Below, one piece after another: positions 55,807-60,750 of a stretch of DNA of 64,000 bases. Position numbers and translations under genes: made by a program. Every line of letters starts with the position of its first letter. Position 1 is the stretch's first letter. Source of the DNA: Chrysemys picta bellii (Eukaryota). The notes under the pieces are model-generated. The model saw only the letters and a program-made list of their open reading frames with translations. It searched no databases and was not told the DNA's origin. Where the stretch lies: the NCBI RefSeq assembly GCF_011386835.1, contig NC_088795.1, positions 16,802,001-16,866,000 on the forward strand, written 5' to 3'.

Positions 55807-56202
55807 CTTTAGGTTTTTACTTCTAGGGTGTGTTCATACCATGTGTGTCAATACAGTTGAAATATGTTGTAAAAATCAGTATGAACTGTACTTTGTAAAC
55901 GACTAGCATTCAATTAATTAAAATACAGTAAAACTTCACTGACTTGAACAAATGACTGGAAATTCATTGTGGTTTACTGAGATTTGTGAATTAGCAAGTA
56001 ACAAAACACAATTCCTAACAAATCAAAGATACTGCGTCACTCAATGGTACTAAGTCCCTAATACTGCAATGTGCTGAGCCCCTCATCTCCTGCTGGAGCC
56101 AATGGGAGTCAAAGATGCTGAGTTGTTCTCAGCTGTTGGACTCCTTAATATTTAGAATCAAAGTTTTTCAAAGCGTATCTGCATTAAAAATATCTCTACT
56201 CA

Positions 56203-56497
56203 GGGCTGGTCCACATTAACCCCCCAGTTTGAACTAAGATACGCAACTTCAGCTACGTGAATAACGTAGCTGAAGTCGAAGTATCGTAGTTCGAACTACA
56301 AGGTACTTACCGCGGGTCCATTCGCAGCAGACAGGCTCCCCCGTCGACTCCGCATACTCCTCTCGCGGAGCAGGAGTACCGGTGTCAACGGCGAGCACTT
56401 GCGGGATTGATTTATCGTGTCTAGACAAGACGCGATAAATCAATCCCAGAAGATCGATTGCTTACCGCCGAACCCAGAGGTAAGTATAGACGTACCC
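56203..56497. mobile_element. Harbinger/PIF-type MITE with TCA TSD (intron 3), opposite orientation to the 50635 copy
   Basis: gggctggtccacatt ... agtatagacgtaccc; TCA at 56200-56202 and 56498-56500. Confidence 0.82.
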
Positions 56498-57108
56498 TCA
56501 GTCATGTACATACAGTTACTGTGATTACTTCCCATCTTCCTCATCTTCTTTCACAACCCCCAATGAATCACAAAAGGGTAATTTTTTTTCAGTATTTGCG
56601 TGCACTGATGCCTCAGGAAATATTGGATGACAGAAAGGAAAGGAAGAGGAACTCACTTATAACGAAATATGCTCCTCCAGAACTCTCTTTTCTAGAATTG
56701 ATTTTCATAGAAAAATGTTTTAACTCCTTCACACGACTGAGAACATACTACACCGACTCACTGAAACAGCACTGTGCTTCTGTGGAGGGATGCCAAAATT
56801 CTGCCTAGGCATTCAAAATAGTGTGAACTACTGTATCAATCGTGACTGTCAGTGTTCAGGAAGGAATATGGCATTGAAAAGAATCAAGCGTCCATTGAAA
56901 TCAAGAGAAAGCCTCCCATTGACTTCAACAGGTGCTGCAGCAGGCCTAAAACGCCTTATCCTGCACTCTCTGAAGTAATTTAGAGTTGTGATCTATAACC
57001 TCACCCCTCTCTACATCTGCCCATAGCGTAGACCAAAAATTCAAGTCAAGTCAATTTTTCAAGTCAGGCCACTTTTTCAGCTGCCGAAGTATGGATTTAG
57101 ACGAATAA

Positions 57109-59661
57109 CACTGGTCTACAATTTTTGAGAAGTCGCCTGCTTCAGAGATGAAATGTGCTATTTATTATGTATTTTGATGTGCTGAATTCAAATATGACAA
57201 CTAAAACAACTGATTGGCTACTGTTTCTAAGATATTTAAGTTTTTACATTTTATGTCTATGTATATTGTGTAGATAATAGAGTTTTAATCATAAATTGTA
57301 AACCTAGGTCTTTTCATGTGTTTATGGTTGCTTTACATGATAATATTTCACCTGTCCTGTTTATGTTACACTTTAAAAATCAGCAAAAGGGTTATATAAA
57401 TAAAATTTATTATGAAACAAAAGGCAAAAAACTATTATGTACATAGTTTAGTCCTATTCAGTGTCTGCTCGGCGCTTCTTGGCTTGTCTCTTGTATTCAT
57501 TAAATGGAGCATCTCTTGTCACTGTCCAGCAATAGTCTGCAAGCATTGATGGGCTCCATTTGCCCTGATAGCGTTTCTCCATTGTTGCAATGTCCTGGTG
57601 AAATCGCTCGCCATGCTTGTCGCTCCCTGCTCCGCAGTTCAGTGGAAAAAAATCTAGATGAGAGTGCAAAAAATGTATCTTTAGTGACATGTTGCAACCA
57701 AGGCTTTTGTATGCCTTGAGGAGGTTTTCCACCAACAACATGTAGTTGACTGCCTTGTTGTTTCTGAGAAAATTTATTGCCACTAACTGGAAGGCTTTCC
57801 ATGCCGTCTTTTCCTTGCCACGCAGTGCATGGTCAAATGCATCATCTCGAAGAAGTTCACGAATCTGAGGACCAACAAAGACACCTTCCTTTATCTTAGC
57901 TTCACTTAACCTTGGAAATTTTCCACAGAGGTACTTGAAAGCTGCTTGTGTTTTGTCAATGGCTTTGACAAAGTTCTTCATCAGACCCAGCTTGATGTGT
58001 AAGAGTGGTAACAAAATCTTCCTTGATTCAACAAGTGGTGGATGCTGAACACTTTTCCTCCCAGGCTCCAATGACTGTCGGAGTGGTCAATCTTTCTTGA
58101 TGTAGTGGGAATCTCTTGCACGACTATCCCATTCGCAGAGAAAACAGCAGTACCGTCAGTACCTTGTGTATCCAGTCTGCAGACCAAGCAAGAGAGCAAC
58201 AACCTTCAAATCACCACAAAGCTGCCACTGATGTTGGTCATAGTTTATGCACCTCAAAAGTTGTTTCATGTTGTCATAGGTTTCCTTCATATGGACTGCA
58301 TGACCAACTGGAATTGATGGCAAAACATTGCCATTATGCAGTAAAACAGCTTTAAGACTCGTCTTCGATGAATCAATGAACAGTCTCCACTCATCTGGAT
58401 CGTGAACGATGTTCAGGGCTGCCATCACACCATCCATGTTGTTGCAGGCTACAAGATCACCTTCCATGAAGAAGAATGGGACAAGATCCTTTTGACGGTC
58501 ACGGAACATGGAAACCCTACCATCACCTGCCAGGAGATTCCACTGCTGTAGTCTGGAGCCCGACAGCTCTGCCTTACTCTTGGGTAGTTCCAAATCCCTG
58601 ACAAGGTCATTCAGTTCACCTTATGTTACGAGGTGTGGTTCAGAGGAGGAGGATGGGAGAAAATGTGGGTCCTGTGACATTGATCGTTCAGGACTAGAAA
58701 TTTCATCCTCTTCCTCGTCTGACTCAAGTGAGAATGATTCTGGTGCATCAGGAACCGGCAGTCCTTCTCTGTGGGGTACTGGGCGTATGGCTGATGGAAT
58801 GTTTGGATAATGCACAGTCCACTTTTTCTTCTTTGACACACCTTTCCCAACTGGAGGCACCATGCAGAAGTAACAATTGCTGGTATGATCTGTTGGCTCT
58901 CTCCAAATCATTGGCACTGTAAAAGGCATAGATTTTCTTTTCCTGTTCAACCACTGGCGAAGATTTGTTGCACAAGTGTTGCAGCATATGTGTGGGGCCC
59001 ACCTCTTGTCCTGATCTCCAATTTTGCAGCCAAAATAAAGGTGATAGGCTTTCTTAACCATAGTGTTTATACTGTGCTTTTGTGATGCAAAAGTCACTTC
59101 ACCACAAACATAGCAGAAATTATCTGCACTGTTCACGCAAGTATGAGGCATCTCTGCTCACTTTGGCTAAACAGAAATGTGTCCCTTTGCAAAATCAAAC
59201 ACTGACAAATAAGAGAGCACGACACTGTATGATTTCTAGAGCTGATATAGGGCAATTTGTTCAGCAGAGTGATGTAAGCTTCGTTATGATTGCATCATCT
59301 ACGACTTCTAGGAATAACATGCTGCAATTCATATCATGTATGATGCAATACCAGCTTCAGATTGCATCATTCATTGTTTTGCCTAAAAAGCAAGTACTGT
59401 CCAAACCCAGTCATAGATTTATTCATAGATCCAGTCGAAGATGTATTTTAGTCATTTCTGGTTTAAATTGAGATCCCTTCCCTTTATAACTCACTTATCC
59501 TCCGCCATTCCCAAGTCAAGGGTTGTATATACTGACCCAATAGCATATCTTGAAAACTAGAGCCAATCAACAATTTTAAGCATCATTTTCATTCTCAGTG
59601 ACCCAGAATTAGTCAAGTTTGACTACATTTATTTCAGAAGCATTTTGGCTGTAGAGCAGTG
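57109..59661 (-). mobile_element. Full-length Chapaev3-type DNA transposon (CMC superfamily), 2553 bp, in ANTXR2 intron 3
   Basis: TIRs CACTGGTCTACA (57109-57120) and TGTAGAGCAGTG (59650-59661), 11/12 match; TAA target duplication at 57106-57108 and 59662-59664; internal transposase. CAC..GTG ends with a 3-bp TWA TSD are the described Chapaev3 hallmarks. Confidence 0.85.
57454..59151 (-). pseudogene. Chapaev3-type transposase pseudogene (single frame, 566 codons including the terminal stop, three premature stops)
   Basis: Track ORFs 58621..59151, 58156..58593 and 57454..58071 share one frame. Internal stops: TAA 58621-58623, TGA 58156-58158, TGA 58087-58089. Motifs: N-terminal Cys/His region (CYVCG, HICCNTC, WREPTDH, CYFC), likely DDE residues in FIDSS, CGDLK and HGERFH, plus CFLC and LHIKLG. 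Confidence 0.88.
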
Positions 59662-60639
59662 TAATTTGAGGCACCCAGTTCTGCAAATCTTGCCTTATAC
59701 CTCTGGTAATAATACTGTTTTCTTGACTTGCTTATTTATTATAAAAACCAATAAACAAACTGAACATAATAAAACATGCCTTAGTGTTACTCAACTGCAA
59801 GAAGGCAGAGAGAGAGGAACGCCTCACTTCAGTCCCTCACAAGTTGTTTATGTGGCTTAATTACTTCACAAATTGTTCATAATCCAAGAATTGTTCCTTA
59901 TATAATTTGAAATGAGCTACCCATCAGCATTTTCTCAAACTACTTAACTGCTCTGTTTTGGGGCTTTTCATGCTGTTTTGACATGGTTCAAAAGGCACAT
60001 GTGGGAAAAATATCAGAGTTTTCAGTAGTTTGACATGAGATCAATCTAACGTGGTGACCTTGAAAACACTGCAATGACTCTCTGCAGGAAGCAATGTTCT
60101 GTAATGTAGATTTCCTGTTGTTTCTGATGTGACTTTTTCTACTAGTTCACTTTGCAACAGTCTCCCCTTCTAACGGTGTATTTTTCTCTTCTGTTTCCTT
60201 TTTTTCCTTCCTAGCTTTCCCTCCAACCTTTCCCTGACTTTCCCAGAAGTGGTCATTTTTTTCTTCCCTTTGAAAACAAAGCAAGCAGTCTCTTCTTATG
60301 CCAGCACGGATATGCAAATCAAATGACAAGAGGTGCAGCAAACAACTCCTCAACCCTCTCTTCAACTCAAGGCAATAAACAGCAACTACAAGGTCCATCA
60401 GACCTCCACTGATTCAGGCTGGTCCCAGATACCAGCACACCTTCTAATGCCTATTTGGAAATCAATAAAATTGTTTTCAGAATTTTTATTTTAAAAAATC
60501 CTGGTTTTATGTACCTTTTCCATATCAAATGTAACATTTATCGGAGATATTAATTTAATGTAACAAGGTTTGTCTTGAACGCAGCATTTACACAGAGCTT
60601 CTGCATCCCTGGATTTCAGTTTACAAAGACGAGCAAGCA

Positions 60640-60750
60640 TCATTATCTCCATTTTGCAAATGAAGAAACTGAAGCATACGGAGGTGAAGTGGCTTGCCTG
60701 TGATCACACATCAAGATAGTGGCAGAGTTGAGACAAAGAACCTAGATCAT
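60640..60750 (-). mobile_element. MIR/CORE-SINE-like fragment
   Basis: attatctccattttgcaaatgaagaaactgaagcatacggaggtgaagtggcttgcc; boundaries approximate. Confidence 0.65.

Follow-up and report, generated by a model that had tools for sequence, protein, structure and literature searches.

A dead full-length Chapaev3 transposon in Chrysemys picta bellii, with a transposase core predicted to resemble that of RAG1 and ends of unequal spacing

A stretch of 64,000 nucleotides (nt) from Chrysemys picta bellii (RefSeq assembly GCF_011386835.1, contig NC_088795.1, positions 16,802,001 to 16,866,000 of the forward strand), referred to here as the window, carries on its minus strand at positions 57109-59661 a full-length DNA transposon of 2553 bp. 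The locus raises the questions of which group this element belongs to, how close its transposase stands to RAG1 and to the Transib transposases, and how its family came to be carried by several families of turtles. The best joint explanation of the observations, in which we place high confidence, is that the element, now dead but full-length, derives from an autonomous cut-and-paste transposon in the Chapaev3 group (CMC-Chapaev-3), that its transposase has a core predicted to be RAG1/Transib-like, and that its family has probably spread horizontally among turtles. The window copy itself is an ordinary fossil, and its value lies at the level of the family. What is new here is that around 12 divergent Chapaev3 families have bipartite ends with a 10-bp asymmetry in spacing, heptamer plus 12 nt at one end and heptamer plus 22 nt at the other.

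Both strands were read across the element. The 12-nt sense termini match each other at 11 of 12 positions, and the target-site duplication (TSD), TAA, is present on both sides. The transposase is encoded in a single exon by one frame of 566 codons, the last of which is the terminal stop at 57454-57456; this frame contains no frameshift and is interrupted by three internal stops. The motifs CFLC, LHIKLG and HFLHSH are readable in this copy, as is the triad D260/D314/E515 in its own numbering, and no other copy of the element was found within the window by self-BLAST. The features are listed below by position in the window.

57106-57108, no strand: TSD TAA, preceded by A at 57105, which fits the Chapaev3 A-TWA...TWA-T rule (PMC4079192)
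57109-57120, minus strand: 12-mer CACTGGTCTACA at the sense 3' end, read inward, with its heptamer-like part at 57109-57115
57116-57137, minus strand: 22-nt spacer of the long (3') end, with an A/T-rich start
57138-57146, minus strand: second end block TGCTTCAGA (read inward), 22 nt past the heptamer, in a layout kept in around 12 families
57454-59151, minus strand: transposase reading frame, read from 59151 to 57454
57607-58374, minus strand: markers of the catalytic core, in columns invariant in 95 homologues and with a RAG1-like predicted fold
58372-58374, 58210-58212 and 57607-57609, minus strand: core residues D260, D314 and E515, respectively
58135-58146, 57997-57999 and 57658-57675, minus strand: core motifs C-x2-C, LH and H-x4-H, respectively
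57616-57618, minus strand: missense change E>K in a column invariant in 95 homologues (E509 in the numbering of P0242)
58087-58089, minus strand: internal stop 3 (TGA), where the family residue is W
58155-58163, minus strand: private 9-nt tandem duplication with internal stop 2 (TGA, 58156-58158)
58621-58623, minus strand: internal stop 1 (TAA), where the family residue is Q
58864-59115, minus strand: N-terminal Cys/His zinc domain (putatively Chapa-type) with C13, C16, C57, C60, H89, C93 and C96, all in invariant columns
59634-59642, minus strand: second end block TGCTTCTGA of the short (5') end, 12 nt past the heptamer
59650-59661, minus strand: 12-mer CACTGCTCTACA at the sense 5' end, with its heptamer-like part at 59655-59661
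59662-59664, no strand: TSD TAA, followed by T at 59665

Chapaev3 elements are defined by CAC/GTG termini, a TWA TSD between A and T, the motifs C(2)C/LH/H(4)H and a DDE triad (Zhang et al. 2014, PMC4079192; Novick et al. 2011, PMC3014272). The termini of the window element read 5'-CAC...GTG-3' within short terminal inverted repeats (TIRs), and the same termini were found in 8 other turtle copies. Its TSD lies between A and T (A-TAA-element-TAA-T), and the duplications elsewhere are TTA/TTA (L005a and L007), TAA/TAA (L008), TCA/TCA (L005b) and a non-matching TAA/TTA (L006); the right end of L004 is truncated. The C(2)C, LH, H(4)H, D260, D314 and E512 columns are invariant in 95 full-length homologues, and the window frame is collinear, segment by segment and over its whole length, with the Garfield_BM transposase (PMC4079192 supplement), as compared by eye and unscored. 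A search with the C-terminal piece of the frame returned more than 2600 unnamed homologues, chiefly from arthropods and metagenomes, and one with a longer homologue as query returned more than 3000 matches, of which around 100 are full-length (550-570 amino acids, aa) on contigs of ~2.1-2.7 kb. A Pfam scan of four pieces of the open reading frame (ORF) gave noise only (TRASH, CHCH, sub-cut-off), and a sequence search of the PDB with the C-terminal piece gave no match.

The turtle family is a distinct family within the Chapaev3 group. Like the Chapaev3 elements of Anolis (PMC4079192, PMC3014272) it has a 12-nt TIR of the CACTG type, which in Chapaev3-1_AC is CACTGRWAAACA, and it resembles Merrow, Garfield, Conan and Chapaev3-1/2_AC in its CAC...GTG termini, 3-bp TWA TSD, single transposase of ~560 aa and motifs. 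It differs in having a gene of one exon, compared to two in Merrow and Garfield, in its very high copy number, compared to 4-988 per family in Anolis Chapaev3, and in the 12/22 layout of its bipartite ends, which is unmentioned for Chapaev3 in PMC4079192 and PMC3014272. The closest non-turtle relative found, from a eukaryote of the marine plankton, is carried on Tara Oceans metagenome contigs (L009, L010 and L011), with 79% aa identity, 85% nt identity in the coding sequence and 70-84% nt identity at the ends; its 562-aa ORF is intact, with a dN/dS of 0.27 and a dS of 0.39. The Tara element is a sister family with past purifying selection, and no donor. The 5' end of L010 and L011 is a variant whose spacer exceeds that of L009 by 2 nt. 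The closest unnamed protein matches, P0002 and P0003 on ENA contigs, were also considered as donors and were rejected because their nt identity is only 75%.

Yuan and Wessler reportedly placed Chapaev3 under CMC. Chapaev and Chapaev3 have alternatively been described as clades of a broad Transib superfamily, with a 'Chapa' zinc domain common to the Chapaev group and the N-terminus of RAG1 (Kapitonov and Koonin 2015, PMC4411706), and a preprint (10.64898/2026.01.24.700457) agrees on the Chapa/NZD domain and reports low similarity in the core. The fold was modelled with AlphaFold2 for P0242, an uninterrupted 562-aa transposase from Chrysemys, using 95 homologues (mean predicted local distance difference test score, pLDDT, 85.9). 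The best 48 matches of this model in a Foldseek search of the PDB were all RAG1, BbRAGL or HzTransib, with E-values down to 4e-8. In VIA-align the RAG1 core was aligned over 364 residues (RAG1 residues 460-1007) at 3.5 Å with a Z score of 19.5, followed by HzTransib (18.7) and BbRAGL (17.8), and the next families were the P element (10.9), Hermes (9.0) and integrases (~8). The transposase core is predicted from this model to fold like the RAG1/Transib core, which provides independent support for the contested placement of Chapaev3 beside RAG1 and Transib.

In mouse RAG1 the catalytic triad is D600/D708/E962 and the zinc site is formed by C727, C730, H937 and H942 (PMC4914335). The equivalents in the turtle family are D260/D314/E512 and C333, C336, H490 and H495, and the second D is separated from the first C by 19 residues, the same as in RAG1. 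As the residue pairs match those of RAG1 in both position and spacing, the 'C(2)C' and 'H(4)H' hallmarks of Chapaev are most likely a zinc site of the RAG1 type. An earlier reading of this DNA made from the letters alone (the sequence-only reading) had described TIRs, a TAA TSD and a single-frame transposase, and had named the element a Chapaev3 transposon and a relative of RAG1 and Transib. All three features were reproduced at the same coordinates, the Chapaev3 call is supported by the termini, the A-TWA-T target, the C(2)C/LH/H(4)H set and the collinearity with Garfield_BM, and the kinship is borne out structurally on the predicted model, where RAG1, HzTransib and BbRAGL rank top by a wide margin.

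The nearest known structures are those of the RAG1 core, BbRAG1L and HzTransib (PDB 4WWX, 6XNX, 6B40, 6PQX), at Z scores of 17.8-19.5 over 354-370 aligned residues. RAG1, ProtoRAG and HzTransib are alike with the turtle element in having a DDE triad with a C-x2-C...H-x4-H zinc insertion and CAC at the cleavage border. With the features of the Transib/RAG1 superfamily in mind, the model has a RAG1-core-like fold with a C2/H2 zinc insertion and the ends are RSS-like by sequence (recombination signal sequence; a CAC heptamer and a second element at a fixed spacer), but the TSD is 3 bp, not 5 bp, in the window copy, L005a, L005b, L007 and L008. The turtle element also differs from RAG1 and Transib in its low identity (10-14%) and in having no RAG2-like partner gene. 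No counterpart of the nonamer-binding domain of RAG1 was aligned in the turtle model, as the match begins at RAG1 residue 460. In the turtle element the heptamer reads CACTG[C/G]T, compared to CACAGTG or CACAATG in RAG/Transib, and the second block of Chapaev3 ends is not an A-rich nonamer and varies by family.

The N-terminal 135 residues were modelled separately (pLDDT 87.4). The sole fold matches of this model were ZAD domains, and these were weak (Z 2.8-5.1, residues 11-73); the NZD structure was not among the matches returned. RAG1 NZD/Chapa likewise is an N-terminal Cys/His domain with two zinc modules (10.64898/2026.01.24.700457; PMC4411706), and the first zinc module of the turtle transposase partly resembles ZAD, as the preprint states for the ZFa module of NZD. 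The model and the invariant Cys/His columns are consistent with a Chapa/NZD-type domain, but are not conclusive.

When the two ends of the turtle element were aligned, a second common block was found inside the termini, separated from the heptamer-like CACTGST by a spacer of 12 nt (5' end) or 22 nt (3' end). This 12/22 layout recurred in L001, in the Tara element and in a firefly element, the second block of which differs (TCTATCC). To extend the comparison, 80 more loci were taken from metagenome contigs, their ends being found by the first 12 nt and the TSD alone, and all diagonals between the two subterminal regions were scored for the 18 elements whose ends were located confidently. The highest-scoring diagonal was +10 in ten elements, +9 in two and +12 in two (with changes in poly-T length), −10 in one (L024, where the orientation is reversed) and 0 in one (L074, which has symmetric long ends), and was unclear in the remaining two. 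Best diagonals of +9 to +11 were observed in 12/18 elements, compared to 6.4% in shuffled controls. Four loci (L014, L037, L050 and L067) were excluded from the spacing count because there the end finder had picked up an inner inverted repeat in place of the true termini.

The sequence of the second block sorts the elements into around 12 families from turtles, insects and marine organisms, and the blocks include TGCTTCNGA, TCTATCC, TTCTGTTTC, TGTAACAC, AAAACTGCAAAT, AAAAAAAACG, GGCCCATGA, TGTTGCAT, ATGTTATGG and TGTATCTGT. Within a family the block is the same at both ends, and it is different in nearly every family. In nearly all families its first position is nt 20 in the short end and nt 30 in the long one, and the transposases of the families compared are 41-66% identical to the turtle protein. 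As these starts recur in divergent families, the spacing has been retained during sequence turnover. The covariation of the block between the ends, together with the unchanged spacing, speaks for a functional second binding site that sits one helical turn deeper in one of the two ends, and on this sequence evidence the second block is a putative binding site for the transposase.

Unequal spacers are otherwise found in RSSs (12/23), in some Transib elements (12/23 ±1) and in ProtoRAG (27/31, PMC8289069), and according to a 2021 review the 12/23 asymmetry is seen, besides RSSs, only in a few Transib families (PMC8355894). No literature linking Chapaev with a heptamer and nonamer was found in a search that was made without the original Repbase Reports, so an earlier description is possible. 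The 12/22 asymmetry adds a second group of transposons, beside the few Transib families, with RSS-like unequal spacers; it bears on the origin of the 12/23 rule and can be tested at the bench. We tentatively suggest, as a possibility that falls short of an even chance, that Chapaev3 ends are RSS-like bipartite signals and that, taken with the RAG1-core-like fold and the C2H2 zinc insertion, asymmetric pairing of the 12/23 type predates the RAG/Transib lineage or is intrinsic to the transposase fold. If this is true, the turtle Chapaev3 family, with thousands of copies and with uninterrupted ORFs, would be a tractable system for the origin of the 12/23 rule.

By analogy with RAG and HzTransib, a dimer of the transposase would recognise each end through the CAC heptamer-like terminus and the second block, and would pair one short-spacer (12 nt) end with one long-spacer (22 nt) end. 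Nicking would then occur at the CAC border and the element would be freed, probably via hairpins on the flanking DNA, before integrating at A|TWA|T with a 3-bp stagger.

The inner inverted repeat that was caught by the end finder (ATATGAC...AAAA...TGATTGGC...GTTTCT-like) lies ~80-120 nt inside each end, at 57185-57230 and 59535-59600 in the window. It is also present in divergent families (L014, L037, L050 and L067), and may be an additional binding site for the transposase.

The distribution of the family was followed from P0123, a protein 95% identical to the window frame, whose 90%-identity protein cluster includes annotated proteins of Chrysemys picta bellii, Malaclemys terrapin, Macrochelys suwanniensis and Pelodiscus sinensis. 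The window copy shares 95.1-97.4% nt identity with the Pelodiscus, Macrochelys, Malaclemys and Chrysemys copies over the full 2.5 kb. Kimura two-parameter (K2P) distances from the window copy are 0.026 for a Chrysemys paralogue, 0.028-0.032 for Macrochelys, 0.042 for Malaclemys and 0.039-0.051 for Pelodiscus, and two Pelodiscus copies are separated from each other by 0.049. These distances are independent of host relatedness, and the coding and non-coding parts behave alike. Sites diagnostic of a host lineage are few (6/1590 in Pelodiscus, 17/2526 in Macrochelys and 1/2517 in emydids, or 0.04-0.67%), and each copy has 0.9-3.3% private changes from the shared centre. One insertion is orthologous between Chrysemys (L093) and Malaclemys (L007), with flanks that differ by 2.4% and an element that differs by 2.0%. 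Since private changes of 0.9-3.3% compare with ~1.1-1.2% per lineage, the copies are only ~1-3 times as old as the Chrysemys-Malaclemys split. The host neutral divergence between families was scaled from this 2.4% value and a relative rate (PMC4054807), and by this approximate dating the copies are far younger than the separations of emydids, chelydrids and trionychids.

Emydidae, Chelydridae and Trionychidae share nearly one founder sequence although they had separated well before these insertions arose. Such a pattern is expected from horizontal spread into, or between, turtle lineages, and not from a single ancestral burst or from prolonged, independent vertical persistence; the sequence comparisons favour horizontal spread but do not prove it. 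Horizontal acquisition had been raised as a possibility in the sequence-only reading, and it gains support from the near-identical consensus in three turtle families, although no donor was found. One published case of horizontal transposon transfer in turtles, that of hAT-6, was found in the literature searched. A family of ~10^4 copies with a near-identical consensus across long-separated turtle families is a candidate for horizontal spread among turtles.

In 20 public runs from ten organisms, 64-75% of the 31-mers of the element were present. Contigs of four of these organisms over 56109-60661 of the window gave a summed word depth of 0.36-1.1 million along the whole element, compared to ~30 in the unique flanks, suggesting ~10^4 copies per turtle genome, mostly full-length, with the summed contig depth serving as a rough proxy. 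In several turtle genomes the family ranks among the most abundant repeats. A further repeat of very high copy number is located upstream of the element, at 56109-56564, with a depth of 0.06-0.8 million in three of four runs and lower in X14, and loose contig ends in this repeat continue into poly-G.

Contigs of two organisms show the state of the insertion site itself. Contigs of organism D enter both ends of the element by 21 nt from the unique flanks with 0-2 differences, indicating that the site is filled. In organism F, one contig of 8231 nt joins 57109 to 59666, so that exactly the element and one TAA are absent and a single TAA is kept; its flanks differ from the window at 141/1606 aligned positions (8.8%). 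The sequence-only reading had suggested looking for such an empty site, and as the orthologous site is exactly empty in organism F, the insertion is younger than the split from this organism.

Decay of the window copy was measured against the majority of 9 other aligned copies of the family. It has 41 substitutions (31 transitions and 10 transversions) and one indel, a 9-nt tandem duplication in which AGGTACTGA is followed by CGGTACTGC on the sense strand. The duplication carries a TGA and is absent from 9/9 other copies, and read contigs of four organisms are also without it (a loose end at 58153 and pieces with 9-nt gaps). The coding region holds 29 of the substitutions, 21 of them nonsynonymous and 8 synonymous, and since this ratio is 21:8 the copy fits neutral decay since insertion. 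Domestication of the window copy was considered and is ruled out by its three stops and the same ratio.

The sequence-only reading had called the frame frameshift-free, and the 9-nt insertion is indeed its sole indel relative to the 9 other copies. Its account of the stops, as CAA>TAA, TGG>TGA and one within the 9-nt insertion, also agrees with the family, which has Q at stop 1 and W at stop 3, and with the TGA of the duplication. The three stops are therefore as it described. It had proposed that an active transposase could be reconstructed with about three edits plus consensus correction; repair would take more than three edits, given 19 additional missense changes, among them E>K at a position without variation and P>L and V>G at positions nearly so. 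The window copy cannot supply transposase. Nor is it a privileged template, because it is one of ~10^4 copies and uninterrupted ORFs are present in public turtle annotations; these include 562-aa family ORFs in Chrysemys and Malaclemys (P0242 and P0239). P0241 was dropped as an intact Chrysemys ORF as it has an internal out-of-frame stretch.

It could be argued that the Chapaev3 label misreads generic DDE features and that the element belongs to another superfamily, either Transib proper or the P element, hAT or CACTA, given that its predicted fold is nearest to RAG1 and Transib and that CAC termini are common to Transib and CACTA. This is very improbable: the TSD is 3 bp of TWA between A and T, as opposed to 5 bp in Transib and RAG or 8 bp in hAT and P, the protein is collinear with a published Chapaev3 transposase, and the C(2)C/LH/H(4)H set is accompanied by an N-terminal zinc domain, putatively of the Chapa type, which canonical Transib is without (PMC4411706). 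Identity to RAG1 and Transib is, in addition, only 10-14% in structural alignments. A purely vertical history, in which the family amplified once in a cryptodiran ancestor and a slow turtle clock has kept its copies alike, carries more weight. Turtle sequences change slowly, at ~1/3 of the human pace (PMC4054807), no sampled turtle lineage lacks the family, and because one insertion is common to Chrysemys and Malaclemys the history is at least partly vertical. We nevertheless consider it somewhat unlikely that descent was vertical throughout. The family was active after the split from organism F, since the window insertion is absent there beside flanks 8.8% diverged, the copies lie 0.9-3.3% from a shared centre when orthologous DNA of Chrysemys and Malaclemys already differs by 2.4%, and lineage-diagnostic differences are at most 0.7% with the non-coding parts included. 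Several points do weigh against a Chapaev3 element that has spread horizontally among turtles. Searches of Pfam, PDB sequences and curated transposable element libraries gave no match naming the family, the comparison with Garfield_BM is visual and without a score, and the copy number is estimated from summed contig depth, a quantity that does not itself count copies. The comparison took in no more than two copies each from Pelodiscus and Macrochelys, and the copies were picked via a 90%-identity protein cluster, which is biased towards little-diverged ones. The split times and the neutral rate (~1/3 human, PMC4054807) are approximate, and the transposition chemistry is drawn wholly from RAG and HzTransib, as no assay of a Chapaev transposase was found in the literature searched.

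The end layout is open to a separate explanation, that 12/22 reflects common descent or chance, for example an inherited 10-nt A/T-rich insertion, and is not a functional spacing signal. The long-end spacer opens with an AAATTT-like stretch in many families, which is possibly a shared ancestral insertion, and as L074 is symmetric and L024 reversed the layout is not obligatory. A by-product of this kind would have to accommodate second blocks that are family-specific yet identical at both ends within a family, starts at nt 20 and nt 30 that are kept across transposases of only 41-66% identity, and the excess of best diagonals at +9 to +11 over the shuffled controls, and we regard it as unlikely.

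Further observations were made on other turtle copies of this Chapaev3 family. The orthologous copy of Chrysemys (L093:3001-4689) and Malaclemys (L007:3001-4689) has an uninterrupted 562-aa ORF in both, with a dN/dS of 0.33 (~15 nonsynonymous and 14 synonymous changes), which is below the expectation for a dead copy; this could be due to chance, to CpG effects or to a selected copy. The Chrysemys ORF at L093 is named 'nuclear cap-binding protein subunit 3 isoform X2' in RefSeq, and P0232, P0237 and P0242 are family ORFs that are similarly labelled as isoforms of host genes. The labels are boule-like isoform X2 in Pelodiscus, and NMNAT3 isoform X1 and NCBP3 isoform X2 in Chrysemys, and they are probably annotation artefacts or exonised transposon sequence. 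Finally, two full-length copies in Macrochelys (L005:2491-5041 and L005:49382-51915) lie 47 kb apart and differ by 1% overall and by 0.2% in the non-coding parts, which suggests that they arose by local duplication or that the family was active relatively recently on the snapping-turtle lineage.

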